64,000 bases of DNA from the IMG/VR virus record IMGVR_UViG_3300027770_000026, positions 124,001-188,000 of that record. One strand, written 5' to 3'. Each line of letters opens with the position of its first letter. Positions within the stretch are counted from its first letter, which is position 1. The notes beneath the pieces are model-generated. The model worked only from the letters and a program-made list of their open reading frames with translations, was not told where the DNA came from and ran no database searches. The translations under genes and the position numbers were made by a program. Of the stretch, positions 5,958 to 62,300 are shown piece after piece.

Positions 5958-5987
5958 ATTATATATGCCTAGGAGCTGTTAAGTCAA
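5958..5987 (-). promoter_or_regulatory. sigma70-type promoter TTGACT-N18-TATAAT for the gp32-uvsX-uvsY operon
   Basis: Near-consensus hexamers upstream of the gp32 leader. Confidence 0.7.
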
Positions 5988-5991
5988 ATTT

Positions 5992-7752
5992 CTATTTGAG
6001 CCCCAAGCCGTTGCGTGTGGCTTGGTAAAGTGTTTGGCCTTTTACTTTCAGTTTTGAGTTCACACCTGTTAATTGGAAGAAGCGTTTTTCATCACCGGCT
6101 GCTGCAGCTTCACGTGCCTTACTGCCGCTAATACCTTCTACGCCCTTGCTGTCTGGATCACGTTCGCCGCTGCTGGCAAAGTTTAGCACCACATGTTCGC
6201 GTCCTTTTGGACCACGAGCAAAGTCTGTAGTACGCACCAGACCACTGTTCCAACTGTTGAGTAGTTTTTCGATACTCTTTGGTCCCGCACCAATTCGATC
6301 CGATCCACCCACAAAGGTCATGTTACGATAACCCTGTTCGTATAGATAGTTGGCTGCGTCAATTGGTGTTTTGAATGCGCCCGATATAATATTCCCTGCG
6401 TATGCTGGATAGATCTGTTTGATAAATTCTGCTTTGGTTTGTGGATCCAACGGATTCTCATCATTATCAACAGTACTGCTGAGGAATATAAATGCCTTAT
6501 CACCACCTGCTTCCACAGTAGTTTGCATCAATTGCTTGTGTCCAAGTGTTGGTGGATTCATTCTACCAAAGCAAAATACTGCTTTGGGCATGGTGCTCTT
6601 GGTTGCAATCTCTTCCGGAGACACTGCAAACTTGGCGCGCAATGCTCGTGTAAAACCTAATCGGTCTACCAACTTGACATTACCACCACCAAATACATAG
6701 CCTTCATGTCCGGCGTCGCCGTTGATCTCAGCATGCACTGCGCTGTTCTTTACCTGCTTGTCTACTTGTTGTTTAACATGTAGCTTGAGATCTGTGAGTA
6801 CAGCCCACATTTCCCACAATGCTTCAAGACCTTTGGCTCCATCTTTTTGATATAGCCAACCGTCTTTGTTTTCGCCCAGCAGTTTCTTTGCTGCCGCAGG
6901 GCTTAGTTGTACTTGGAGATAATCCATAAAGCGAGGCACAATGCGAGAGCTTACATCATTCTCGTCAATCATTTGTGAAATAAACTTGCTCATTGCGGTA
7001 AGCACAGTCTTGGCCTTCATGCCTGCAAGGTCATTGATAAACTTGTTAACAGTGTCTGTATTACTTGCAACTGTACGTTTGGCTGCGGACAACTGTTGCT
7101 TGCCGATTGTAACCTTAGGTGTGTCCTTCATCTCACCCGTAAAGAACACAATGCCTGCACCTTCGCGTAACCCTTGTAATCCACGTAGAGGAATACTAGC
7201 CGATGTTAAGCTAGGGAAGAATGTGTGTACAGCAATACCGCCGTTGCTACGAGCAATGTCCTTACCAAGTGGAGTTTCCACTCCCACAGAGTATTTTACT
7301 GTGCGTGGCTGGAATACGTATTCGCCATTCTTTGTGTCTGGTTTTCCATACCACATGAGGTCGCCAAACCAATACTGGTCTGCTTTCTTAGGTACAATCT
7401 TTTCTAGCAAAGGGCGTATTGCGTCCTCTGCTTCCCATAATTCTACACGTTGAGCGCCACGTGGTTCGTCATATGCACGTATGGTACTAAACTCTGCTTG
7501 GCCTTTGGCTACTTTAGCAAATTGATAATGGTCAACAAATACTACCTTACCTGCAGCATCACGACCAAATACAATGCCTACACTGCCGTCCCATTTAATG
7601 GACAGTTCTTGCGGATTGGCTTCTAGATTAACTAATGCTTCTAACGCTCGCTTGCCACCATCGGGTTCTGTGACCCAGTCCTCGATGTGAGCTGTACCTG
7701 CTTCAAGCAGCGTACGCTTTGCTTTATGCTGCAATACTTCAAATATTTTCAT
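5992..7752 (-). CDS. fusion: ligase-type nucleotidyltransferase domain (KWDG; DUF6267-like) plus HxGH cytidylyltransferase-like domain
   Basis: SIKWDG, GHEGYV and KLVDR motifs, then FGRMNPPTLGH, GGSDR and ISGSKAR. Likely start MKIFEV at 7752. Confidence 0.75.
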   Translation of the reverse strand: MKIFEVLQHKAKRTLLEAGTAHIEDWVTEPDGGKRALEALVNLEANPQELSIKWDGSVGIVFGRDAAGKVVFVDHYQFAKVAKGQAEFSTIRAYDEPRGAQRVELWEAEDAIRPLLEKIVPKKADQYWFGDLMWYGKPDTKNGEYVFQPRTVKYSVGVETPLGKDIARSNGGIAVHTFFPSLTSASIPLRGLQGLREGAGIVFFTGEMKDTPKVTIGKQQLSAAKRTVASNTDTVNKFINDLAGMKAKTVLTAMSKFISQMIDENDVSSRIVPRFMDYLQVQLSPAAAKKLLGENKDGWLYQKDGAKGLEALWEMWAVLTDLKLHVKQQVDKQVKNSAVHAEINGDAGHEGYVFGGGNVKLVDRLGFTRALRAKFAVSPEEIATKSTMPKAVFCFGRMNPPTLGHKQLMQTTVEAGGDKAFIFLSSTVDNDENPLDPQTKAEFIKQIYPAYAGNIISGAFKTPIDAANYLYEQGYRNMTFVGGSDRIGAGPKSIEKLLNSWNSGLVRTTDFARGPKGREHVVLNFASSGERDPDSKGVEGISGSKAREAAAAGDEKRFFQLTGVNSKLKVKGQTLYQATRNGLGLK

Positions 7753-7756
7753 GCTG

Positions 7757-8551
7757 TTACTTACTGTGTGGGAATAGATGCTTGACTGCGTTCCACTTCT
7801 TAGGAACAACTTTCAGCACACGTTCCAAACCTGAGATACTGGATATGTCGCGACCATTCGCATGTGTGCCCACCATAAGTTTAGCAACGCCATCCTTATC
7901 TGCCCAACTAACTAAGACTCTGCCAGTTTCACGATCTACTACGCCCTTGTCTGGACTTAGCTGTAGCGCACTGTTTGGCTTTCCCTTGGCGTCAACAATT
8001 TCTGTCTTGCCGCTAACGGGACTAGGTGTCATCTTGATCAGTGTGGGCCATATTTCTAACCAAAGGTCTCCGCCGCGCATAGTAGGATCAGTGGAGTAGT
8101 CCATCTGATGTCCTTTAATTGCAATGGCTGCATCAGGTTTAACAATTAGGTCCACTTGTGCAAACTTGTCTTGATCAAATCTCACAACACAGTTAAGTGA
8201 CGCTCCGTTGTTTTTGATACCTTTCTCAGTAAGAGCTTGTGCCAACTTCTGCTTGCTACCTTTAAGGTCCTTATCGGAAAATGCACTTAGTACATCTTTT
8301 TCATCTAGCATGATGTCAATGTCGCCAGAATCTTTTTTACGATTGTTTGGGTCGTAGTATGGATGTGTTTCATCCCATATGCCCGCGCCGCCCATAGTCC
8401 AGTCGGCATGCTTGACGCCCACTGCAAGTAGTATCTTAGACAACTTGTCTTTGATTTCTTTAAAGTCTTTTTTAGTGACCCGTGTGACAGATACGCCCAT
8501 CTTCTCAGCGGCCTTCTGACTCATCTCTTGCAGTAGTTCTTGTATCTTCAT
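7757..8551 (-). CDS. Pol-beta-superfamily nucleotidyltransferase-like protein
   Basis: GGAG...DSGDIDI and QVDL motifs. Confidence 0.7.
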   Translation of the reverse strand: MKIQELLQEMSQKAAEKMGVSVTRVTKKDFKEIKDKLSKILLAVGVKHADWTMGGAGIWDETHPYYDPNNRKKDSGDIDIMLDEKDVLSAFSDKDLKGSKQKLAQALTEKGIKNNGASLNCVVRFDQDKFAQVDLIVKPDAAIAIKGHQMDYSTDPTMRGGDLWLEIWPTLIKMTPSPVSGKTEIVDAKGKPNSALQLSPDKGVVDRETGRVLVSWADKDGVAKLMVGTHANGRDISSISGLERVLKVVPKKWNAVKHLFPHSK

Positions 8552-8554
8552 GCG

Positions 8555-10756
8555 TTACTCTGCTCGTGCTTTGAGATGCTTGAGGCTCTTGATTGCGTCA
8601 CGTGCCATTGTGTCCTTTACTGCAGGCTTTTGCTTGTCATGCTTTTCTAAGAAGTTCTTGATAACTGTCATTGATACGTAGTGAGATGTCCCATCTTCAA
8701 AACGTACTTTATGATTACCATCTACGTCCTTAGCTTTACGTAGTTGCATTACAATGTGTGGGATCTTGTCATCATCCGCATCATCTTCTTTATCGTCATC
8801 CTTTGCTTCGTGCAATGGATCATCTTCGTAGAAGTCGTTAGGTGAACGATGGCCATGATGTTCTGTTGAACCACGAACCATTTCGTACTCAACATAATCC
8901 TTAACACGATTGATATAGTCGGCTGCCAGAGTAATCTTGGCCTGTACCCAACCTTCTAGCTCGCCCATACTGTCAAGCATGTTGTGCAAGTCACTTGCGT
9001 TCTTTACCATCTGGTACAGTTGTGACTGTGCCATTTGAACTTCATGATCATCTCTCACATCTAGCATGACCTGATGACCTTCTTTTATAACTTTGGCTTT
9101 TTTCTTTCTAGACTCTTGTACTGGCTGCTCAGGTTGTGCAGTTTCGTCACCGGGTGCAGGTAGTGCAGCAGGTGCTGGTTCCTCTGCTGGCATTTCTTCT
9201 GTATCATCTGCAGCATCCTTTGCTGCACTAATTGCTTCCTTCATGCCCAACGGATCCGTAACCCATGCTCCTAGCAACTTGCGATAAGAAATACCTGACT
9301 CTTCTGATACTTCGTGAATTGCATCGTACTGCTTGTCTAGATCATAGTCTCCGCCTAGTTTTTCGTGAATATCCGATAGTGCAGACTTAACTTCACTTTC
9401 GTCTTCGCCACGTTGCTCGCGGTCTTCTCTGGTTATGATCTGAGTAAATGGAATTGCACCTGCTGGGGTAATAATTATTTTCTTTTTTGTATCAACCTGA
9501 ATTGGGCCTGGTTTGAATTTTTGCTGACCACCTGCACCTGGCATTTGCCCTGGTTTCTGCTGCATCTGCTGTTGTTGCGCTTGTTGTGGTTGTTGCTGTT
9601 GTCCTGGCGCTGGCTGCTGTTGACTTGCCATACCTTGACCAAAAGAACCAACTGCTTGTCCAGCAACATTTGCACCTTTGACTACTGCATTACTTGCCAT
9701 ATTGCCTGCAGCTTGTGCGCCTTTGACTACTGCATTACTTGCCATATTACCTGCAGCTTGTGCGCCTTTAGCTACTACGTTACCTGCAGCTTGTGCGCCT
9801 TTAGCTACTACGTTACCTACAGCTTGTGCTCCTTTTACTGCAGCAGTGCCCAAAGCCTTTGCACCCTGTACTACTGCGCCACCAACACGGGCAGCACCTG
9901 TAGCTAATGCTCCAGCGCCTGCAGCTAATGCTGGAAGAATTTCATCTATTTGTTCTTCGCCCATGTACACTTCGGGTTCGTTGTTGGGCTTCTTACCTGG
10001 CTTTGGCTTCGGCTTTGGCTTCGGCTTTGGCTTCAACACTCCAAATGGATCAGTGTCTTGCTTTGGTTCAACAATTGGTGATAAACTTTTATCTTTTGGA
10101 TCTATTGGTTTACGTATTAGTACTTCGTGAATACTCAAAGGTTGAAATGCCTTACTGAACCATTCGCGTACTGCTGATTCATCCATACCAGCACTCAGAC
10201 GAACACGAGCCGGTACGTTCTTAGCATAAGCAGAATCGTATATAACGCTCCACTCCTCAGATACCATTTCCTTATTATCGCATTCGCACGGCATTGCTTC
10301 ACACACTGGGCAAGCATCCTCGCCTTCTTTTACTTGATAGTTCTTGCCATCTACCTTGAATGACTTCTTGTGTTGCATCTTAGCAGCAGCAAGTGCGCCA
10401 CTAAACTCGTTGCCTTCTTCCATGTCATCTTCGTCAACTAGGTTTTCGGCAATACGTGTCTCTTCGTCGTGTGCGCCTTTTGCAGAATTTAATTCATCTG
10501 CAAAGTCTGCAAATCCGTTCTTTTTAGAAAGGCTATCAAACCCGCTCTTCACTTCATCATGACTTACTCCACGCATGCCGCCAGCGACCCGTGCAGTAAC
10601 CTTATCGGGAGTAGCAGTAGGCTCGGGGCGACTTAATACATCTGAGTGTATTGTTTTTAGTGCGCCTTCAACGTCTTCAGTAATCATACCTTTTTCTTTA
10701 GTGGACGGTGTATTAATTACCGATAGCCATTTCTTCATGTTTTCTTGAGTTGTCAT
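8555..10756 (-). CDS. modular low-complexity protein, probable internal head/ejection protein
   Basis: 733 aa made of short modules separated by hydrophobic-x-E sites. CPVC..PCEC motif, PK, Q-rich and Gly/Ala repeats. Lies in a late operon. Confidence 0.7.
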   Translation of the reverse strand: MTTQENMKKWLSVINTPSTKEKGMITEDVEGALKTIHSDVLSRPEPTATPDKVTARVAGGMRGVSHDEVKSGFDSLSKKNGFADFADELNSAKGAHDEETRIAENLVDEDDMEEGNEFSGALAAAKMQHKKSFKVDGKNYQVKEGEDACPVCEAMPCECDNKEMVSEEWSVIYDSAYAKNVPARVRLSAGMDESAVREWFSKAFQPLSIHEVLIRKPIDPKDKSLSPIVEPKQDTDPFGVLKPKPKPKPKPKPGKKPNNEPEVYMGEEQIDEILPALAAGAGALATGAARVGGAVVQGAKALGTAAVKGAQAVGNVVAKGAQAAGNVVAKGAQAAGNMASNAVVKGAQAAGNMASNAVVKGANVAGQAVGSFGQGMASQQQPAPGQQQQPQQAQQQQMQQKPGQMPGAGGQQKFKPGPIQVDTKKKIIITPAGAIPFTQIITREDREQRGEDESEVKSALSDIHEKLGGDYDLDKQYDAIHEVSEESGISYRKLLGAWVTDPLGMKEAISAAKDAADDTEEMPAEEPAPAALPAPGDETAQPEQPVQESRKKKAKVIKEGHQVMLDVRDDHEVQMAQSQLYQMVKNASDLHNMLDSMGELEGWVQAKITLAADYINRVKDYVEYEMVRGSTEHHGHRSPNDFYEDDPLHEAKDDDKEDDADDDKIPHIVMQLRKAKDVDGNHKVRFEDGTSHYVSMTVIKNFLEKHDKQKPAVKDTMARDAIKSLKHLKARAE
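9676..9831. repeat. coding tandem repeats (2x45 nt plus 2x33 nt; KGAQAAGN units)
   Basis: Units start at 9676, 9721, 9766 and 9799. Confidence 0.9.
9999..10034. repeat. 12-nt tandem repeat x3 (GGCTTTGGCTTC; encodes KP repeats)
   Basis: Direct observation. Confidence 0.9.
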
Positions 10757-10770
10757 GAGTTAGTTAATCC

Positions 10771-11217
10771 TTATCTTGTCTTTAGTGTGCTGCGTAGGAA
10801 CCATGCATGCTTCTTGTGCGCTTCCATTCTGTCAGCGAGGAAGTTGCTGAGTGCATGTTCCTTGTTAGTTTCTGCTAGATCATATGATGCTTGCAGAGAA
10901 TTTAGTATTACTTCGTTTTCTGCAAGTAGACCACTTGCCATTTCAAGTGCGTTTGGAATCTTGCTGCTTTCTTGCACTTGACTGAGCTGCTTAAATCGCT
11001 CTAGTGTTCCTGGTGCGTAGCTTTGTAGCTGACGAATATGCTCGGCAAATGGGTCAACAGATCCTTGTACTTCCGAATAAATTTCTTCAAACAATTTGTG
11101 AAATTCGTAAAAGTCCGCTCCTTCTACGTTCCAGTGATATCCCCAGGCCTTAACATAGAACACAAATGTGTTTGAAAATGCAATCTTAAGTTGCTGAATT
11201 AGTTCGTCCATATACAA
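10771..11217 (-). CDS. dps: Dps/ferritin-like protein
   Basis: YHWNVEG.DF.EFHKLFEE.Y, D..AEHIR and HKKHAWFL signatures. Confidence 0.92.
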   Translation of the reverse strand: MYMDELIQQLKIAFSNTFVFYVKAWGYHWNVEGADFYEFHKLFEEIYSEVQGSVDPFAEHIRQLQSYAPGTLERFKQLSQVQESSKIPNALEMASGLLAENEVILNSLQASYDLAETNKEHALSNFLADRMEAHKKHAWFLRSTLKTR

Positions 11218-11232: not shown

Positions 11233-11871
11233 TTATTTAGCGAAGTTAAAAGACTTTTTGGTATACTCTGCACGGGTCCATCCCATGAGATACCTAGCTT
11301 TCCAATCGTTTTGTGCAAAGCCCTGCAGGTGCTGCCATTCTCCTTGATGCTTGCGTATTTGTTGTGCAAGATCCTGCCAATCTTGTTGAGTTAACCAGCT
11401 TTCAGTTTGCAAGCGTTTATCATTGATGCGATTGAGATCATAATCGTCTAGCTCAATATGCAGCACTTCAACCGCGTCGCCGGTGTCATCCAAATGATCC
11501 ATAGCAAAGTCAAAGCCCCATTTAGGTTTAGTCTGTGCCATAAAAGCTGCACCTGGGTGATTATAGCATTTAATTTGGGCTAATGCATCTTCCGCAAAAT
11601 CACAGCGGTGTAACAGCATGCAGTGATCTAGGTGTAATCCATTTTTAATAATAGGCAGTAGCTCTAGCCAGGGATTCTGAAACGCCCAATGATTGAGGCA
11701 GTCTGATAAGGCAAAATAGTTGTCTTGATATAACTTGCGTTCGGCTACTGTAAGTTCAAATCCATCTTTGTCGTAGTAGTTAAAGTCGCTTCGCCTAACA
11801 TTGTGTGCTTCGCCCCGGCATGTAATATCCGCGCAAAAGCCCGCACCCGTAGATCGCTTTAACATAGTCAC
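11233..11871 (-). CDS. hypothetical protein
   Basis: 212-aa ORF in operon (YDKDGFEL, KPKWGFDF). Start may be ATG 11865. Confidence 0.75.
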   Translation of the reverse strand: MTMLKRSTGAGFCADITCRGEAHNVRRSDFNYYDKDGFELTVAERKLYQDNYFALSDCLNHWAFQNPWLELLPIIKNGLHLDHCMLLHRCDFAEDALAQIKCYNHPGAAFMAQTKPKWGFDFAMDHLDDTGDAVEVLHIELDDYDLNRINDKRLQTESWLTQQDWQDLAQQIRKHQGEWQHLQGFAQNDWKARYLMGWTRAEYTKKSFNFAK

Positions 11872-11875
11872 ATGT

Positions 11876-12442
11876 TTAATTTAGCTGGTTGATACAGCGT
11901 ACTATATTTTTTGCCCAGTTACTGGCTTTTTCTGCTAGTTCCCGATCGGATTCAATCTTCTTACCATCCTGGATGGTGCTTTCTAGCATACTCTTAGGTG
12001 GCGCTGTGAAACCCAGATAGCTAGCAAATGCGTTATGTATACCGTGTATGTGTTGGAAGCCGTCACTACTACCGCTTACTATGGTAGCAAATACTTTCTT
12101 AGCCATTGGGTTAATTTTGTGTTCGTTAGCCCAATCGTCAAAGTTGTCCATGCGCTCGATAAAGCTTTGGGCTAAACTGCTATGCACACCCCACCAAATT
12201 GGGGTAGCAATAACAACAGCGTCCATATCAATTACACTTTTGAGTAATGCCGTCATATCATCTGCACTGCCGTCGTCTGCTGCAAAGTTTGTGCTAAAGT
12301 CGTAAGTCATGCCTTTGAGCGACCGTACTACAACATCGGCGCCTTCGCGTTCCAGTGCTTGTTTAGCCACGCGACACAGTACTCGTGTGTTGCTGGGTTT
12401 GTTTACAGCTTTTAAGCTGGCTTCTACTATTAATATACGCAT
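11876..12442 (-). CDS. flavodoxin-like NAD(P)H-dependent FMN reductase family protein
   Basis: S...SNT FMN-phosphate loop, D.VVIATPIWWG, FIERMD. Confidence 0.85.
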   Translation of the reverse strand: MRILIVEASLKAVNKPSNTRVLCRVAKQALEREGADVVVRSLKGMTYDFSTNFAADDGSADDMTALLKSVIDMDAVVIATPIWWGVHSSLAQSFIERMDNFDDWANEHKINPMAKKVFATIVSGSSDGFQHIHGIHNAFASYLGFTAPPKSMLESTIQDGKKIESDRELAEKASNWAKNIVRCINQLN

Positions 12443-12465
12443 GTGAGTATTTATTGATCTTTAAT

Positions 12466-13344: not shown

Positions 13345-13422
13345 TGTAATGTCTCCCAGTTATTTAGCATGCAGTGCGAGATTATTTTGGTAAAATTCAA
13401 ATAAATAACAAGAGGGCATTTT

Positions 13423-50389: not shown

Positions 50390-53300
50390 TTATGATATGT
50401 CAAATACCGTAGTTTTTTCTCTAATAAAGATAGCCCATTGAGTATCAGTATCAGCCATGCTAGACGTTGGGTCTGTTACATCATACCAGTTATAAGCTTG
50501 CTTGATTGCAAGTACAACTCGTAGCCCACTCTTAGGTGCTTCGTTAAACGTAACCTGATAGTACGATCCTGCGCTTTGATCCACTGTATAGCCTGATGTC
50601 ATCTTTTTACCAGCTACGTATACTAGCACCGAGTCCGTATCATGTTCGGAAGTAGTCAGTAGTAATGGCAGCGCAAAAGACACAGTGGCTCCGTTTGCAG
50701 AGTATGTTTCGCTATTCATGTACTCGGATGCGGGTAACTGATTTCTGTAGCTCATGTCCACTGCAAGTGTACCTACGCGATGATTTCCTGCGCCGGTGCC
50801 TTTCGTTGCTCTTCTCAAACGACTAATGTAGTCTGACCCTTTCTCCCAGTATTCAATTCGTTCCTTGCCAATCATTACTACGCCCGGACGATTGATTAGC
50901 GGGGACGGTGCAACAAGTGCAGAAGCATTAGTTAGATAAATTCTGTCACTGGCTGTAGTAACTGCTTGAGAAACTGTTGTTGAGTTTTCCAATGGTAATC
51001 TGTATGCACTCAGGCTGCCCATCATATCTTTGAATACCCTAAAGCCTATTGTTGAGCTAGTAGTTGATGTTCCTGCAAAGTAGTGAACAACAATTACGTC
51101 ATTGTCGTCAATGCCGCCTGCAATATTCACTATTCTATTGGATTCGGCTTGTAAGTACCATCCTACGACAGGAGCAATGTATACTCCGTTCTTGTATACT
51201 TGTACACGGTTAACTGCAATAATATCATCGCTCAGAACAATCTGTCCGCGAGAATAGAAGTTTGCAAGTTGTTGCTGTGTTGGACTTAATCCAATTCCGT
51301 ATATGCCATATCCTTGATACTGAATGTGCAGTGTATTATCAATGCCAAACACTTCTGTTCTGATACCGGTTAGCGCAGTGTCGTTATACGTTGTAACTAG
51401 TATTTTAGTATTAGTAGAACCGTCGTCTACCATTGATGTCAGTGTTAAGGTGCTACCTTGTACATAGTAATCGCCGCTTGGTAATACTGTTATAGTAACT
51501 ACATCGTTTAGTGCGGGTGTAGCCGTCAACGTAACAACGCCTGAACTGTAACTGCTAATAGATACTATTTGGCCGTTAACTGTTGCTTGAATATCGCCCG
51601 CTACTAGTCCCGCAATATTAAAGTTTGGGCATACTGGTATGTTAAATTGAGCAGTTGCTCCGGTGCCTAGTGCGTATGCTGTTGCAGGCGGGGTTAAACG
51701 TAAGCCTGCTTCTGCACCTTCTGCAACAGCATATGCAATTGTACTAGTGCTCAATGGGGCTGGCGCGCCAGATGGATTTGTTATTGTATAATTCAATGAT
51801 CCATTAATAAAAATTGATTCTACAAAACTTTCTGTGTAGTTTTTGAGATCAACCGGTACACCTGCTACTGTGAGGTATGAAACAATTCTAATTACTGCCC
51901 CAATTGCAGGAGCAGGACTAATAGTTACTAATACATCATTTTCATAAGGAGCTGAATCGCTTGCAAAGGTATGTGCGGTCTTTATTCCATCAACTACAAC
52001 AATACATTGACGCAATGGATTATCAAGTCCTACTCCGGTTACTCGAAACACTTCGCTAGATCCGTTACCTACAAAGTTTTGAACTTGTTCTACGCTTGGC
52101 CCATTATCGTTTGTTACTACAGCAGTGATAATGCTGTTTGCTGCAGGTGCCGTATTAAATTGTAACTCTGCATTTATTTGTCCCAATATGTTAGAGTAAT
52201 CAATAATATATGCAACACCTGGATCCTGTACCAGTCCGTTAACAAATACTGTTATATTATCGACACTACTTGGTACTGGGTTGAGCGCAAAATACGTAGT
52301 TGTTCCGTTTCCTGATATTGTTTGGATACTAATATTCTGATTTTGTGACTCAGCTGTGAATACCTTAACATCCAATGCGTCAAACACTTGCCCCGACACT
52401 AGTTCTTCTGTGCTTGGTGTCGTATCTGGTCCAATGAAGCTGCCGCCCGAATTAGAAACTTCAGCAGATGGGTCGTAACCGCTAGACGACGCAAATCGTC
52501 CACCAGATTGATATGTGTCATACCCGCCTAATTCTACTAAGTTGCCGTACGGGTCTAGTTCCCAATTGTCAAAATCAACAGAATCAAATCCACGCGCCTG
52601 ACTTGCAAAGCCTGGTCCAGTTGAGAATTTAGGACTTACAATCTTAGTCTGATCGTAATCTGCTCCTAACAACAATGGCAGTAACGGAGGATTCAATATC
52701 AACGATATAGTTGTATTGTTACTTGGTGCTGTTGCAAAGTTTATGGTCATCTCGCTTGGATACACCGTGTAATCGCTTGGCTCTACTAGAATATCGCCCA
52801 ATGCAACCTGCATTAATTCTTCGTACATGAAGTCTTGTGGCAGGTCAAATGTAGTGGTTACGCCGTCGCCAATATGTGTTTGAATAATTCTTTCTGGTAT
52901 GCCGGCTTGTCCAGGTTGCGGATCGTAGAATGCTGCAATTCTATCGGCTGCATGCCAATCGTCAAATCCTGGATTATCCTGTGCAGGATCGCGTGTTTCC
53001 GGATAAAGAATATCTGCTGTTCCCTTAACACGGTCAAATCTCATTCCAGTTTTAAACATTCTAACTGGAGTCTTACCTAGTACTGCATATGCTCTTGCGC
53101 CCGATCCATGTCCGGGCAAGCTAACGATTTCTACTGTTGGGGGAGTCAGATATCCCTCGCCTTCGTCTACTACTATGATTTGACGAATTGCATCAAGATT
53201 TACTACACCTGGGCCGCCTGCTACGTTTGCAAGCACATCACCTGGCAAGTCTGTAGTATCAATTGAACTGTCCTTAATTGCTTGCTGATCCAACCATAGC

Positions 53301-56300
53301 TTTCTAGCAGAGAAATAATTATCCGCACCTAATGTTTCAAACGATTGTGCAAATCCTAAATTTACTGCGTAAGCACTAGCAAGTCTGACGTTTCCTTCTA
53401 GTACAGTTTTACCGCCTGTTAACTTAATTGTTGGCGCAATGTCGTATCCAGTACCACCGTCAGCTACTACGATTGCAACTACGCTGTATCCTCGGTTATC
53501 TCTGTAACTGCGCCATGGCCATTCATTTTCAAATCTGCTTGCTTGCTCCGGGTCGTCAACTACACTTGTTTCATAGTGGTTATCAACTAGATGAGGAGGG
53601 CAGTCAAAGTCTGTTGTCAGACTACCAAACACGTCCTTGCCCGAGTATACAGAAGTGTATTCTCGTATCTTAGTATGATAAGGTTTGACTTCTGTAATAT
53701 ACTTTTCTAAGCTGTCGTCTATGTCTAGCGCGTACACAGGACGTTCTGCAAGTTCAGCAACAAAGTGTTTGACTTTAATGAAGCTACTCTTGAATGCCCA
53801 GTCTAGCTGACGCTGTTCAACTAATGCATGACGGACCATACGGAAAAACCAGCTGTTCCACAAATACTTGTATTCATTTACAAATACGTTGTCACGCATT
53901 GCTGTCAGAATGTTTCTAAGTTCAATGGTAGGCTCAGAGTCAAATACTGCACTGTCAAACGAACTTGTATCAAATGACATTGATGTATTGAAATCTGCTG
54001 CAGTGATGTCTAGCTTAATAGTGCCGTTTTCCAGTGCCATTATGGTGGTATCACCTGTTGAATCCTTACGCAGAACTCTCCAGTAGCCCGGACCCAATAC
54101 TTTAACATTAGTATCTACATAATTGCTGTCCTGAAACTCTTGCTCAGTAGCAAGTGTTACTGCTGCGATTGATCCCTCGGGATAGTCTGTAGAATAATAA
54201 TCAAGTCGCGACCAATAGCGTGTTGTATCGTATTTCTGTACACGTGATAGCATTAAGTTTGTGCCGTCCCACATATAGATCGTCCACAAATTTTTACGTG
54301 TCTCGTCGCTTTCAACTAGCAACAAATATCCTGCAGGTTTTGCCAGCAAGTCGCTAACAATAATATCTGCGTATGTAGGAACAGATTCGTCCCAGTTTTG
54401 ATACTCGGTAGTAAGTGTTGTTGAGCCATCGTCAAACGTTGTATCACCTGTGTCGATTGTTAAGTCTTGAACTTCCATGATCAATGGCTGTGGATCAGAC
54501 TGATTCATTGTGCCTAGATCAACATCTTCAACAATGATAGATGCTAGATATTCATTTAGATATTCTGCGCAAACTTCAATTGCCCCTACACGGTCGTTAA
54601 ACATTGTCTGACGTGGACGAATCTTAACGCCCAGTCGCTTGTGCGCAGCTAGTTCAACATCTGGTACATTATTTCCTGCTAGGTCACGCCCCGTCAGGCT
54701 GTCGACCATCTTGTTAACAAGTGAAGTTGGCGGTGCAACGTTATCGCCTTCGCTTAACAATGTCCATTCTACGTGACGTGGGCTATTTTGCTCAACTCGC
54801 AGAACTTCAATTTGTAGAATTTGTTCGCCGTCTACTAAATTATCACGCAAGTTTTGAGTAACAACTCCGGCACTGCCCGCAGCAGCTACCCATTGGTATG
54901 GGCCATTAGTTAATGCTGTTGCGATGCTTGCTACACTCAGTGTTTTCTTACTTGACTGCGAGATAGACTGCTTGCCCGCAACCCAGAAGTAGTATCGGAA
55001 CACCGTAGCGCCGTTGCTGTCTGTTGTAACTTTGGTATTATACGGCTGCAGTCCGCCCAGTGGAGGTGTACCCATTGACGGAGTCATACCATTGACATTG
55101 TACGCTGACGGCACTGTGGTGCTTTCAATCCATTCACATACAGTAATAGTACTGCCTGGGAATAATTGACCCCAGTTCTTTATCTTGTACGATAAGTCGC
55201 CTTGTTCATACCATAACCATACTGCAGTTGAATTATCCCACCATGTAGTTCCAACTTTTTCTTCTGCCCAGAAAGTATTTCCGGGCGAATTCTCTTGATA
55301 GATAGATGGGTCAATTGATAATGTATAATCAACATTGATCATAGCTTCACTGTCGTGTAGATCCTTTAGCGGATCCCATAAAGATAAGAACTCAATAACC
55401 TGATCTTGTACTGGATCGTAGCTGAGTGCGCGATTAATTAGTTTAGTATCAACCACTTGCTCTTGTTGTGTTTCTGCAGCCCATCCGTCTTGCGTATTAT
55501 CGTATTCGTATATCTTGCCGCGAACTGACCAAGGACTTGCAATGATAACTGTATCGTTTACTTCCGATAGTGCTGAACCAAATCCTGTAGTAGAATCATC
55601 TACTGCACTAATAGGATTGAATACAGATCCTTCCCACACATACTGTGTACTATATAAACTCGAACCCGGTGCTGCGCCGTAACGACTGTGCAATCCAAAG
55701 CTTTCTACTGCACCGTATCCAATGATTACATCTGTAAATGTAGTGTCGTTGGCATCAAAAGTTGTTGTACTGCTATCCAGTATTAACTTCCATACATATG
55801 GTGCAGTTGGGTTGCCTACTAGTAGCTTGCCGCTGGTTGTAAACTTAACAGTTTTACCAAACAAGTTTAATCCGTTAGTGTTTGGTCCAGTTAGTACCTG
55901 TGTTAACGACGCAGTTCCTGATGTTGCACTAAAGTCGTAGATTCTAACAATACCGTCAGACACTAGTGTATCAAATGTAGTGTCGCCTGTATCAATGATT
56001 GTGCCAAACGTATCGTAAGTAGTGAATCTTGATCCCACTGCCACACGTACATTTTCACCAACTGTAGTAATGTCAATTGGGTGCTGCGACTTAATGGGGA
56101 TACTTGTAGTCCCTGTTACGATCGCATTTATGTCTTGTGTTAGAATACCGTTCTCGTCAATAGTATACACATAAATGTGGCCATTACCTGCAGTATCTAG
56201 TATTGCTACCTTGTTAGAGTCTGCGGCCATTACAATACCAGTACCTGTTGCTGTTTGTGTAACAGGCGCTAGTTGTATGCTGTATGTATCAGTTGCTGCA

Positions 56301-59300
56301 GCAGAGCCTGTGTATGCAGTGTGTGTGCCCAAACCTACTACAGGAGTAGTAAGATCTTCGTCAATATATAAACTTACAGCAAAGTTATCAATCTTTTCTA
56401 CATAGAATGTACCGCCGTTAATAGCATTGCTGTTTGACTGTACAACTCCTGTTACACCTGTGATAGTAATTGCTTGTTTGTCACTAAGTCCGTGATAGAG
56501 ATTTAGTGCAATTGTTCCAGCTGCTGTTGCAGTCTTAGATAGTGTAATTCTGTTTACGCCCGGAGTATAATCTTCTTCTATATTAATAATGACTGTGTTA
56601 CTTTGAACACCGGTACCTGATACTTGTGTACCAATCTGTACGCCTGCAACAGAACTAGCTGTTGTCACGTATGCACTTGATACGGAAGTAGTGCATGCTG
56701 CAATACCAAATGTCATGTCAATTGGGTCAGGGTACGAATTAACTGTTATATTTTTAACAGGTAATGTAAAGTTACCATACTTCAATTTGTAAATTGTAGC
56801 TTCGCCGGGTGAACCAATTAGCATTAGCGTATCGCTTACACGGGCAAGTGTTGTGCCAAACTTAGCACTGGTTATACCCACAGGAGCGTCAATGGTATAT
56901 CCCAATGTCCAGTCGCCTGTTGGTCCTCTGTTCCAAACTTGTACAGAGCCGTACTCTGTACCAATTATACTATTAGCAGGGCACCCAATAATTAGAGTTT
57001 CGCTGTCCAAGTGTGATATTGAATAACCAAATTCACATGCTGCACTTACGTCCGATGTACTACCGCGTAGTCTATCAACATATGCTAGATCGCCGCCTGC
57101 TTCTGAGCGTTCAAAAATTAATACTGCCTGATCGGTTTGCCCGCCGGCAGCAGTTGCTTCTGCTCTTGCTGCAGTCCAAATAATTGAACGATATGTCCAT
57201 GCGTGTACCCTGGATCCAGTAACTGAATAGTTAGAAGTTGGGGCAGTTAGCCCAGCTGGTTGCGGGCCCACTAGCCATGGATCTTGTTTCTTTAGAACTG
57301 CCCATCCGCCATCGTATGCATCGATCCATAGACGATCGCCTACTTCACTTTCGTACACACGAACTGCAGAGTCTATGTGACTTGAATACGCTACACCTGC
57401 TGCAGTATATGTATTATAAGCCTGTGAGTTTACGGGAATTGTTAGTGCTTGATCGTCGTACAACGAAATCTTATTTGTGCTTACATATTTTGCGTAGTAA
57501 ACTTTGCCGTTAAGTTCAGCCATTCCCGCAATACGATCAATAATTAAACGTTCGCCGCCAATATATGAATGATCGTTGGCAAATGTTAGCACCACTGGGT
57601 TAGTGTTAGTTGCTGCAGTAATAACGTTAAATTCTACTGAATTAAAATTATTGTACTGGACTGGTAGTAACTTAACAATGAAGGCACTAAAGGTATCACC
57701 CTCGTTCAATCCGGTACCGTTAACTATTGTAAAGCTAGTAGTAGATTCAACAGTTTGTACAACTTGATATCCGTTTATACCTGGTACAGGTTGTAGTTGC
57801 CCTGGAGCAGATACCTCGGAGTATGTCAAATCGTCTAGAGTGACTAGCCAGATATCTTCATTTTCTGCAAGATCAAGCTTGCTGTCCAATGACACTACAT
57901 CATTAGCTAGTATTGTTATATTAAATGGGCCAAAACGCTTAGTCTTGTAGATGGCCGAATCAGTTAGTGCTGTTTGTGCAACCCAAATAATTGTGCCATT
58001 TTTGTTCATCAGACTTGCATTGATGTTTGATAGTTGATCGTGCGATAGCACTGTTGCATCAACCTGATCTATTCTTGCATAGCCTGCATATTTTTGTTTG
58101 AATTTTGCTGTAGTCAGCGGGAAGATGCTTCCGCTAACACGTTCGCCTTGATCAAGAATTTTGTCTGCAGGTATTCCTACAACATTACGTTCGTAAGATG
58201 TTGCGTTATCTAGATCTAGTGCTATCTTAGAAAATTCTAAATCGTTTGAGTCTAGTAGTAATTCAACTTCGTCTGTGTTATCTGCTAGACCAAATTCGCC
58301 AATACGGAATGCCCATTCGTCTTTGATATCAACTGACAATTCACTGTTAGGATTAATGCCGCGTAGTAACTTGGTTACTGCTTGCTCTGTACCCTTTTGC
58401 GTAATCATGCCTTGATAGAACTTAAACTGAGATTCGTCATCTACTAATAATGACTGTAGATAATCTCTTGGCTGGAATCCAATCAAGTGACGAGCATAAG
58501 AACTAACGTCGCTTGTAATCTGATCAACACTGAGGTCATAGAACTGTTCAAGACGCGCAGCCATTGATTCTAAGTTTGGCTGCAGGAACTTCTTAGGTTG
58601 CTTTGCCAGCTTCTTCCACTTAGAATAATCAAATATATCACCACTGTTATGCACAGTTGTTGTTATGTATACTGTGGTGCTAATCTTAACAAGATCGCCA
58701 TTTCTGTAATCTGTGTAACTCTGCCAATCGTTGATGTTAGCTTGATCTAGGGTGAAGCCTGGTGCAAACAGTTTACCATTCCAACTATTGCTCTTACTTC
58801 CCTTAATCTTTAAACGTTCTTGTCTTGCGCCAGTTGTTGAATCAAATACGATATCACTGAAATCAGTCTTATCGTCAAACACAACCAAATGGTCAAACTC
58901 GCTTATAACTGCTTTTAGCAAGTAGATTGAGCGATCTGCTGTAACAGACGATACTGTGATTAGGTCAAAGTTTCTGTCTACTGCAATGCTGTTTGCACGT
59001 AGTGGTGTACCGTTTTGATCCAACACGCCGTTAGGATCCGAATATACTCCGTACAGTGGGTCAAGGTCACCTTGCGGGACATACATCTGCACAAACTGAC
59101 TTGCAGGGCTTAGTGTTAACGACGACCCGTTGTTCCAGTTCTGTAGACTCCAAAATAGGAATTCTCTACCAGATAGTATCCAATTGCGAATTGAGCCTAG
59201 GTCATTGTCGAACTGATCAAATACAAATCCTTGATTTTCTAGATAACGTCCGTATGCAATTATAAAGTCAAATACTTCTTGCGCAGTTGAAAAGACGGTT

Positions 59301-62300
59301 CCGTAATAAACCTTAGCAGGATTTGTACTGAATGTTTTCCAATATGTTGCAACAATACCACCTTGTACAGGCAATGTTTGTAGTGCTGCAAAGTTTTCAA
59401 AGTCAAACGCACTGCTGCTTGTGTGATCTGTTGTTACTCTGAAGAATAGTCCGTTATACTTGACTACTTGTCCTTTAATGTAATAGTAACCGTCTCTCCA
59501 ATCTAGATAAGACGACGACTGCTCGCCTACACGCAATGAGTCTTTTTGACCTTCGTCATGTAAGCTTGGTAATATACTGAAGTATGCTTTCTCTGTGTCG
59601 TATCCTTCTACTCTCCAGCCGGTATCAGTACGGGTAATAATTACGCCACTATAGGTTAATGTATCAATTGGACTGCTTTGATCTAGTAGCAATTGATAGT
59701 TGCTATCCGGTAGCAAGCTTAATGAGTTCTTACTGCCAGGTGCAACTGCGTTAATGTATACCTGCAACTTATCCTTGTCAGTAAAGCCAGTCATTCTAAA
59801 CATCAGTCGAGGGCATATACCCGATACAAAATTGTTAAACTCGCTTAGGTCAATATTAAGTGACTTGGCTCTTGCTTGTATCCAAACAAAATATCCAGTA
59901 GTGTAAGTATTAGTAACACTTGCTTCGACATCAGATTGACGTACTACTTTACCTACTGAGGTAATAGTTGTGTCGTATATCTTTTGCAGAGTATTAGTTA
60001 CTGCATCAAATGCAGTATCAAGTAAATCAAATCCTGATCCAAAGTATAGACGAGAATTGGTCAATGCCTGATACAGTTGCACAGCAAATGGATATTCGCT
60101 GCTTCTAATCCAAGCTTGTTCTACCGGACTGCAGTCACCAAACTGCCAATCACGATTTAACAATCTTTGATCTGTAATCTTAACTAGCTGTGATGCATCA
60201 GGTGACAATAGTACGCCGTGATCGTCTACTGGGATGATATCCTGTAGTCTGTGTTCGGCATTGTATCGCACATAACGTGTGTCAACACCTGCACGATAAC
60301 CCTGACGAATTAGACCCTGTTCTAGGTCTTCCCACAGTTTTGTATTTTGCTTGGTGTATGGAGCAGTGCCGTATTCACTTGCCCACCATGTTGGCTCTTC
60401 GTGGAAGCCTAGCATTTCCCATGGTGTAACGTTTGGATATGGTGTGTCAAAATAGTGACGATATACTCCAAACCAGCTGCCAATTAGAATCTTATTACCA
60501 AACACATCTTCCTGACCGCGATAATTCCATTGCCACGGGTCACTAGTAACAGGATGACTGCTGTAGTTTAGCTTGGACTTAAGGATCCATTGTCCAAAGA
60601 ATCTGTCAAATACATCGATGTAATTCTGAAAGTCTCTTTCGCTAGAACGATAGTAGCCCGGCAGTAATGCAAATTTATCTAGTACCTGCTTGTAAGAATC
60701 ACTGCCTTGTTTCTTGATGTTGTTATAGATTCTGTTCTCTAGTTCAAGTAGCAGTTCGTCGCGCTGATCGCCAAATGCTGGCGTCAGGCTTCCGTCGTGT
60801 CCTCTAATAACAGTTACTAGTCCCGATGGCTGCTGTATAGTTGTTAGTGCTGGCACATATGCTGGTGCAATGCCCAGCTTTGCAGGAGTAGCAGCAACCC
60901 AGTTCTCTGTAGTAGTATCGTACTGACGAACAACAATCACATCATTCTGTGTTAGCGGATAATTGGTTGAGATTGTAAGCGACGACAAAGGAGTATCAAA
61001 GTCGTAGTCTTGGTAACGTGCGAGTAGTATGCCGTTGTGATAAACTAGTACAGCCTTTCTATTTGACTCTTCATCTACGTATGCCGTAGTTAGAGGATAG
61101 GTCTTGTCTTCCTGATAGCGAACCTTATAGCTATTTTCCACAAAGTTTGTATATCCCGGAACCATGTCACTGTCATAGAATGGGAAGTCTGCTGTTTTAC
61201 CCAGTACGTATTCCGATAGAATACTGTCCAGCATTGTTGGCACTGGATTTTCTTCGTCAAATACAACTGTATTATACTTCTGTATTACAGAATTTTTAAA
61301 TTTAGTAAATTCGTTACGTGCATATTCTAAGCTTTGAACAAAGCCCAGTGTTCTATTCTTTAGCAAGGCCATTGCTAATAAGATGTTACCGTTGTGATAA
61401 CCAAACTTAGTGCAATAGGAATCTAGTGTTGGTTGTATGAATAGATTGTTGTTGCCAACTGAACGACCATCTAACGTTGTTAGTAACTGTGCGCCGCTAG
61501 TTAAATGAGATGCTAGTTCACCAAACGTCATTACAGAAATTTGTTGATTGGAAGGATTTGTTGTTAGACTTAAAGGAAGCCTCAACACCAAGTCTGTTTC
61601 TGTAATGTCGTCATTAGTCCAATGTGTGATCATTAACTTGTCGTTGACTTTTAATGTATTTCTGAATACTAGTAAACTGTTTGCTTTAACTTGCTTTACT
61701 TTTCCGTCAACTGCTGTTGCATAGTCAATTACTCTATCAACCAGATCGTAGTCTTGACCCTGATACAGCAATTGATCGTTGAGCTCAACTATAACTGTTT
61801 GTTGTACATCACTCTCAATGACGGAGATTTTTAATTCAACTTCGTTAGTTTCTACGTCCACGTAACGTAGATCAATTACAGGAGGTTTGCCAATGATTGG
61901 ACTATCAAGCACAACAGAACGAAGCGAATCATCGTTTACGTTAAGTGTGTAGAAACTTTCGCAAGCTAGTTCTGTAGTAGTTTCTGACAGAGTAAATTGG
62001 AATATGTCCTGGCTATGATTCCATTCAAACTGAATGTCGCCAGTTAAGCCAACAGACTTATAACTCAGAGGGAAGCCAATTTCGCTATCGTTAGTACCTG
62101 TTCCTCGTTTGAACGAGAACAACTTGCTACCAATGAATGTGCTACCTACATATGTTGCTCGATCGCCAATGCTTGTTTTGTTAGAATCAAACAAATCAAA
62201 CAGTGGTTCTTGATTGATTGCTGTTTTATTCTGCGACTGAACCCACTCATTGTTTAGATAATAAAAATTCTTACCTGCATTACTATTGCCGTCAGTAACT

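Follow-up and report, generated by a model that had tools for sequence, protein, structure and literature searches.

Whether a phage can inject a ready-made nucleic-acid end-repair kit along with its DNA is the question raised by two tightly packed neighbouring minus-strand genes, P0002 and P0001, which fill positions 5992-8551 of a 64,000 nucleotide stretch (here the window, bases 124001-188000) of the 265,892-bp IMG/VR virus record IMGVR_UViG_3300027770_000026. The record has an estimated completeness of about 80%, and it belongs to a freshwater jumbo phage of the T4-like kind whose genome measures at least 266 kb. Between them the genes hold three nucleotidyl-transfer domains, four when a paralogue elsewhere in the genome is counted, all with their catalytic motifs intact and genetically linked by fusion. 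The best explanation of the whole, given a probability of about one half, is that these domains make up one conserved enzyme module which is made late, is targeted to the capsid, is injected and repairs nucleic-acid ends; the phage, then, probably does inject such a kit.

The motifs and N-termini quoted in a preliminary description of this DNA were all found at their minus-strand positions, and its three distinct nucleotidyltransferase folds are borne out by structure models and fold searches and can be named more closely, as a polymerase family X (PolX) palm plus thumb, an RNA-ligase-like DUF6267 domain and a HIGH-signature domain resembling nicotinamide mononucleotide adenylyltransferase (NMNAT) and phosphopantetheine adenylyltransferase (PPAT). 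The catalytic residues are invariant in the 24 P0002 and 50 P0001 homologues compared.

For P0002 the structure model is confident (predicted local distance difference test, pLDDT, 91.8; predicted template-modelling score 0.85), a thumb subdomain follows the palm, and the fold search returned PolX-specific similarity. Terminal uridylyltransferases, MenT, CCA-adding enzymes and CD-NTases match over the palm of about 100 residues only, and so P0002 is likely, from the model, to be a minimal PolX-like enzyme, a narrower assignment than the earlier "Pol-beta-type signature". The Pol-beta palm features are in place, with the hG[GS] motif at G54-G55/G57 (GGAG, residues 54-57) and the DxD...D carboxylate triad in DSGDID (74-79) and QVD (132-134), and G54, G57, D77, D79 and D134 are the invariant residues. 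At 264 residues the protein is too short to hold an 8-kDa lyase domain, as is the PolX of African swine fever virus (ASFV). No Pfam, PHROG or NCBIfam family is assigned to it, the PolX profiles PF14792 and PF14791 fall below threshold (PF14792 E 0.1, 13.3 bits versus a cut-off of 25), sequence and profile searches of the PDB gave nothing significant, and its close homologues number only 27.

P0001, with its true ATG at 7752 and its stop codon at 5992-5994, carries DUF6267 (PF19782; residues 22-370, 89 bits versus a cut-off of 27, E 5e-25). Motif I of the covalent nucleotidyltransferases, KxDG, is KWDG at residues 53-56 and is present in the cyanophage orthologues too; motif IV, EGxV, is EGYV at 350-353; and the basic motif V falls within KLVDR at 360-364. 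K53-W-D-G56, H349-E-G-x-V353 and K360 are invariant among the 50 homologues, as are G404-H405, S542-G543 and R547 of the HIGH domain, and Y352 and R364 are likewise recorded as invariant. The P0001 model has a pLDDT of 87.4, and RNA ligases were the sole solved folds to match the DUF6267 domain. Taken together the invariant KxDG, EGxV and downstream Lys and the fold matches make an RNA-ligase-like covalent lysine nucleotidyltransferase the likely assignment, one that leans on the structure model. No Pfam or NCBIfam ligase family matches P0001, PDB sequence and profile searches with it gave nothing significant, and hhalign of the family profile against single-sequence T4 Rnl1 and Rnl2 gave a probability of 0.1%, which is uninformative. 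The phage has a canonical ATP-dependent DNA ligase (PF01068, genome 234095-235405), which rules out DUF6267 as its sole DNA ligase, and no canonical RNA ligase (PF09414) was found in the 266 kb of the record, so that the ligase-like domain probably has a special substrate. Homologues of P0001 fall into more than 205 clusters, mostly on jumbo-phage contigs, and a literature search on DUF6267 or "cytitidyltransferase" found nothing. As a side observation, DUF6267 is in other viruses also fused to Cu/Zn superoxide dismutase and pterin-4a-carbinolamine dehydratase (Atlas clusters; P0069, P0082), and many homologues of the DUF6267-HIGH fusion bear C-terminal extensions, reaching about 1,000 residues.

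In the C-terminal domain the HIGH motif takes the form TxGH, within GRMNPPTLGH (396-405), and is joined by an ISGSKAR motif, which gives the (H/T)xGH and ISxxxxR pair on a Rossmann-like fold; the domain's assignment as an NMNAT/PPAT-type nucleotidyltransferase by modelled fold and motifs is supported. Residues 385-584 match PHROGs named for a phage "cytidyltransferase" (3041, E 3e-33; 395, E 7e-25). It is from such database names, from weak PF01467 and TIGR00125 matches and from a proposal in a cyanophage paper (PMC9146016) that the domain could be taken for a sugar-phosphate or glycerol-phosphate cytidylyltransferase working on envelope precursors, its neighbouring domains being unrelated, and this is judged very improbable. 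PF01467 (CTP_transf_like) reaches 16.1 bits versus a cut-off of 21, and no substrate-specific family was matched in the Pfam and NCBIfam scans. These two results weigh against a second idea, itself held to be quite unlikely, in which the domain adenylylates NMN or phosphopantetheine and so rebuilds NAD+ or coenzyme A, for example against NAD-depleting defences, with the ligase-like domain as an NAD-using or regulatory partner. What NADases leave behind cannot be turned back into NAD+ by an NMNAT alone. No NAMPT or NAPRTase gene was found in 266 kb of the phage genome, so that there is no sign of a full NAD salvage route, and the NAD rebuilding once suggested for this locus has no direct support. 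That the domain is obligately fused to PolX-like and ligase-like ones points to nucleic-acid chemistry.

These "Rosetta-stone" fusions, as read from sequence, are the strongest evidence for a single shared pathway. A P0002-family profile search over 1.84 billion representatives gave 104 relatives, several of which carry a fused DUF6267, and in both P0155 (888 residues, 48% identical to P0001 over 585 residues) and an 886-residue open reading frame (ORF) of locus L019 a leader, a PolX-like domain, DUF6267 and HIGH follow one another in a single chain. In a 282-kb relative (L013) a PolX-like gene, a gene for a 341-residue protein and the DUF6267-HIGH fusion are all adjacent in that order, and the 341-residue protein is the orthologue of a leader-bearing 362-residue ORF of the present phage, which starts MRIREILREGGW, lies outside the window next to a leader-bearing NUDIX gene (genome 94002-94448) and is its second PolX-like paralogue. 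In locus L021 the orthologue of this paralogue is fused to a PolX-like domain, and the DUF6267 fusion follows immediately downstream; Atlas clusters join domains like it, or PolX palms, to DUF6267 or CTP_transf_like, and its own Atlas model resembles giant-virus PolX proteins, which for their part carry a fused DNA ligase. When the P0002 profile was set against the paralogue in hhalign the probability was 2%; the GS/DxD/D motifs line up by eye, and the link was later set by BLAST and the fusions. The double and triple fusions in other phages indicate that the polymerase-like, ligase-like and adenylyltransferase domains act together. The preliminary description had a kit of two genes, both of which stand, and the unit is larger than it allowed, with a second PolX-like paralogue and with the leader on about 24 proteins and not two. 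Complex prediction for P0001 with P0002 scored 0.00 and gave no answer, which is evidence neither way. Just upstream of the module the 282-kb relative has DnaJ-like and ClpB-like proteins (L013:5488-8569), and downstream of it a canonical PF09414 RNA ligase (L013:19808-20824).

Quite how such a module would reach a new host is suggested by the short leaders with which both proteins begin, P0001 reading MKIFEVLQHKAKRTLLEA at its N-terminus. That they are capsid-targeting-like, as first proposed, is supported by their recurrence over the genome, their conservation within families, their [ILV]-x-E ends, their disorder in the models and the presence of a gp21-type protease. Residues 1-9 of P0002 and 1-19 of P0001 have a pLDDT below 50 and are the only low-confidence parts of the two models, and both leaders end in aliphatic-x-Glu. 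In a crude ORF call over the whole phage genome a start of the form M-[KRH]-x-x-[ED]-[ILFVM] is found in 21 of 320 ORFs, with three more via alternative starts (about 24 carriers), versus 8 of 1651 internal methionines (p 2e-11), and a second motif, [ILVMF]-x-E at residues 5-12, is found in 14 of these 21 versus 41 of the 299 others (p 2e-7). Three ORFs read ...EFITE, and related IMG/VR loci are similarly rich in leader-type N-termini (up to 7 of 32 ORFs). The carriers are unrelated and include a ClpS-like protein, an NT5C-like 5'-nucleotidase, NUDIX and GH19 proteins, many unknowns and a 76-residue ORF that sits where gp67 would be expected in the head module; what is common to these unrelated proteins is a short N-terminal propeptide, as predicted, ending in L/I-x-E. 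Of the 121 members of the P0001 family, 114 begin M-x-[ILVF]-x-[ED]-[ILFVM], given more narrowly as M-x-L-x-E-[LMIF]-F, and 114 of 121 have I/L/V/M at P3 and Glu at P1 directly before G-I-x-H-x-E-D, the linker varying in length and the propeptides spanning 12-34 residues in all. The P0002 family has variable leaders ending [ILV]-x-E before [SG]-G, and some of its members start exactly at the [SG]-G point with no upstream room for a longer start. Synonymous codons within the leaders vary freely and so the conservation sits in the peptide; a DNA-level element (promoter or downstream box) was rejected on this ground.

The leader-bearing enzymes might instead be ordinary intracellular replication and repair proteins that are never packaged, their common N-terminus being a clade-specific helix or a translation-start preference, and this is considered unlikely, at perhaps half the weight of the packaged module. 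Such a view draws on the cyanophage orthologues of P0001, which have no leader, begin straight at the domain and are flanked by gp41/MazG and gp61 within the replication module, on the leaderless PolX-like gene of the 282-kb relative, on the UvsY, UvsX and gp32 genes just downstream of the P0001/P0002 pair, and on the modest enrichment of the leader over the N-termini of other phages (p 0.01-0.03; 5 of 240 N-termini of T4 and cyanophages versus 21 of 320 here, p 0.014). It has to contend with selection acting on the leader peptide while synonymous codons vary, with an aliphatic-x-Glu site kept behind linkers of variable length in 114 of 121 relatives, with the likeness to T4 propeptides and the disorder in the models, with the presence of the leader on unrelated enzymes and on the gp67-position ORF, with the placing of the genes behind late-type promoters, and with a cytidylyltransferase homologue detected in purified cyanophage virions.

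In T4, propeptides of 10-20 residues direct proteins to the core of the prohead and are clipped off by gp21, a protease that cleaves behind Glu, for example at ITE-6 in Alt (PMC9026906, PMC5694885). The present phage has T4-type head genes with a gp21-family prohead protease (PF03420, E 1e-26; genome 214606-215238) and a gp23 major capsid protein (PF07068, E 5e-101) at genome 214.6-217.6 kb, and its major capsid protein reads IAE|S where the alignment places the maturation site of gp23. When virions of cyanophage S-SZBM1, purified on CsCl, were analysed by liquid chromatography-mass spectrometry, "one enzyme (cytidylyltransferase)" was detected, SSZBM1_140, and the virion proteome does not list DUF6267 (PMC9146016). 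SSZBM1_140 is 30% identical to the HIGH domain of P0001 (E 3e-20), and its upstream neighbour SSZBM1_141 is a DUF6267 protein (E 4e-130). The S-CREM2 virion proteome also includes a cytidylyltransferase, ORF154, a candidate homologue of the HIGH domain here (PMC10665884), and there is the ASFV precedent of virions that package PolX and ligase enzymes of base excision repair (BER) (PMC12172490). On the leaders, the protease, the late-type promoter and the cyanophage virion data, packaging and injection are well supported and as yet unproven.

A late timing is consistent with the promoter signals. The TAAATA element nearest upstream of the module lies before the Dps-like gene (Table 1), none lies between it and P0001 on the minus strand, and the intergenic gaps are of 4-15 nt, so that the P0001/P0002 end of a late operon behind a TAAATA promoter, as described at first, fits the sequence. 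Minus-strand copies at 13366, 12453 and 11239 precede three genes upstream of the module. Genome-wide the element is under-represented (137 copies on both strands versus about 270 expected), and 71 copies lie in sense within 100 nt upstream of ORFs, many of them before structural genes. The near-consensus sigma-70-like promoter that stands before gp32 indicates that, over a few kb, early promoters of the host type take turns with late-type TAAATA ones. A separate observation is that distances from TAAATA to the start codon are bimodal over the genome, with a short class at 3-9 nt and a longer one at 15-24 nt; the former, for example 12448-12453 on the minus strand, 5 nt before an ATG at 12442, would yield late mRNAs that are leaderless or nearly so, often without a Shine-Dalgarno sequence.

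Table 1. Coordinates of the features discussed (window positions unless the genome is named).
Feature	Position	Strand	Family or locus
P0002, 264 aa, minimal family-X-polymerase-like nucleotidyltransferase (palm + thumb), candidate	7757..8551	-	
P0002 leader, residues 1-9 MKIQELLQE, predicted propeptide, L-Q-E site	8525..8551	-	
P0001, 586 aa, leader + DUF6267 (ligase-like) + HIGH nucleotidyltransferase fusion	5992..7752	-	Pfam, PHROG
P0001 leader, residues 1-17 MKIFEVLQHKAKRTLLE, predicted propeptide, L-L-E site	7702..7752	-	
DUF6267 domain, residues 20-378, putative covalent nucleotidyltransferase (RNA-ligase-like) core + helical insert	6619..7695	-	
HIGH-signature nucleotidyltransferase domain, residues 385-586, NMNAT/PPAT type	5995..6600	-	
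Second PolX-like paralogue, 362 aa	genome 94448-95536	-	L009:18451-19536
Leader-bearing ClpS-like adaptor	genome 53675-54061		L008
Leader-bearing NT5C-type 5'-nucleotidase	genome 76220-76759		L009
Leader-bearing GH19 hydrolase	genome 111134-112090		L010
Leader-bearing gp67-position ORF	genome 213537-213767		L012
P0003, 733 aa, low-complexity, upstream in P0001/P0002 transcription unit	8555..10756	-	
Dps-like DNA-binding protein gene, first after promoter	10771..11211	-	phrog_3636 E 7e-33
TAAATA late-promoter-like element, 22 nt before Dps-like ATG, nearest upstream of module	11234..11239	-	
Sigma-70-like promoter TTGACT-18-TATAAT (11/12), right after P0001, before gp32; next unit starts	5958..5987	-	

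In the proposed mechanism the module would comprise the PolX-like P0002, the ligase-like DUF6267 and the NMNAT/PPAT-type HIGH domain, plus the PolX-like paralogue encoded elsewhere. Both genes would be transcribed late from the TAAATA promoter, and the leaders of 9 and 17 residues would work like T4 capsid-targeting sequences in carrying the enzymes into the prohead core, where a gp21-type protease would cut after LQE9 and LLE17, the mature enzymes being ejected with the DNA; late synthesis, prohead entry, cleavage and ejection are fairly well supported. In the new host, before phage gene expression, the PolX-like enzyme might extend or fill 3' ends and the ligase-like domain might seal them, the substrates being breaks in the incoming genome or in RNA, and the HIGH domain may supply, regenerate or remove an adenylyl group (an NAD-type cofactor or 5'-AMP). 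These roles in 3'-end extension or filling, sealing and adenylyl-donor recycling are weakly suggested. The injected kit of the preliminary description keeps its folds, its leaders and its late-type promoter, whereas the tRNA repair, CCA addition, NMPylation and PrrC or Thoeris rescue attached to it are without direct support.

A bolder extension, considered unlikely, is that a clade of freshwater T4-like jumbo phages loads at least 20 different enzymes by way of one protease-removable leader, and that DUF6267-HIGH carries out an undescribed NAD- or AMP-linked end chemistry at entry, such as NAD-driven sealing, 5'-end capping or de-adenylation. The cargo would then be a four-domain PolX/PolX/ligase-like/NMNAT-like machine together with NUDIX, 5'-nucleotidase, ClpS-like and GH19 proteins, an injected enzymatic proteome far exceeding that of T4. 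If the leader is a true capsid-targeting sequence, the sequence of an uncultured jumbo phage would be enough to tell which proteins it injects; counter-defence and genome repair that act ahead of expression would become open to study, and new packaging tags would be on offer for phage engineering in laboratory systems. The DUF6267/cytidylyltransferase pair, with matches in 502 phage records and in over 200 metagenomic clusters, ranks with the most common uncharacterised genes that T4-like phages of sea and fresh water carry; the locus frames it both biochemically, with polymerase, ligase and adenylyltransferase together, and cell-biologically, as capsid delivery, and both are testable.

As to the surroundings, DNA of the window turns up in freshwater DNA metagenomes only and no RNA run contains it. 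Megablast found no near-identical DNA in the phage collection and hence no close cultured relative, and the best protein matches are to cyanomyoviruses at below 30% identity. P0003, which has no leader and whose only family matches are weak ones to TonB-proline, contains AVVKGAQAAGN repeats along with a KP repeat and a stretch rich in Gln, and a partial homologue of it adjoins the enzyme module in locus L021. Window positions 50390-64000 on the minus strand are taken up by one open reading frame, about 4,800 residues long, that runs past the window (genome 174390-188798).

T4-type capsid targeting and virus-borne polymerase-ligase repair are already known, and the phage families met here are uncharacterised and very widespread. 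By analogy, the closest systems to the module would be the repair set of PolX and ligase that ASFV packages in its virions and, among bacteria, LigD with its pairing of polymerase and ligase. Sequence similarity to ASFV Pol X or to the giant-virus PolX-ligase fusions is not detectable (12-16% identity), the partner here is the RNA-ligase-like DUF6267 instead of a DNA ligase with an OB fold, a HIGH adenylyltransferase comes in addition, and no apurinic/apyrimidinic endonuclease was identified. With the Rnl1, Rnl2 and Rnl5 ligases (T4 Rnl1, Trypanosoma brucei REL1, Naegleria NgrRnl) DUF6267 has in common the lysine motif KxDG, EGxV and a downstream Lys; it differs in the lack of profile-level similarity, in a large helical insert (about residues 218-334), in a conserved N-terminal HxED motif and in its fusion to HIGH. 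The HIGH domain shares with NadM or archaeal NMNAT and with PPAT (CoaD) the Rossmann-like fold, T/HxGH, ISxxxxR and a size of about 160-200 residues, at an identity of 13-15%, and is always linked to DUF6267, as an adjacent gene in cyanophages and as a fusion here.

The cyanomyovirus pair (P-HM1 PHM1_161/162, S-SZBM1_141/140) holds orthologous DUF6267 and HIGH proteins in the same order, with the cytidylyltransferase seen in virions by mass spectrometry; unlike the present locus it consists of two separate adjacent genes without a leader, set in the replication module of these T4-like phages and with no adjacent PolX-like gene noted. Nearest in delivery are the head proteins of T4 that carry capsid-targeting sequences and are processed by gp21 (the internal proteins IPI-III, Alt and gp24), with which this phage shares a leader of 9-17 residues rich in K/R, Glu and aliphatic or aromatic residues and ending [L/I]-x-E, its occurrence on otherwise unrelated proteins and a gp21-family protease. 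T4 records give the propeptides MAKINELLRE for gp24, which MKIQELLQE of P0002 almost equals, MKTYQEFIAE for IPII and IPIII, MKTFKEF... for IPI and MELITE for Alt. The leader here, known from sequence alone, is one residue out of register with that of IPII/III, and in contrast to the handful of carriers in T4 there are about 24 in this phage, many of them recognisable enzymes.

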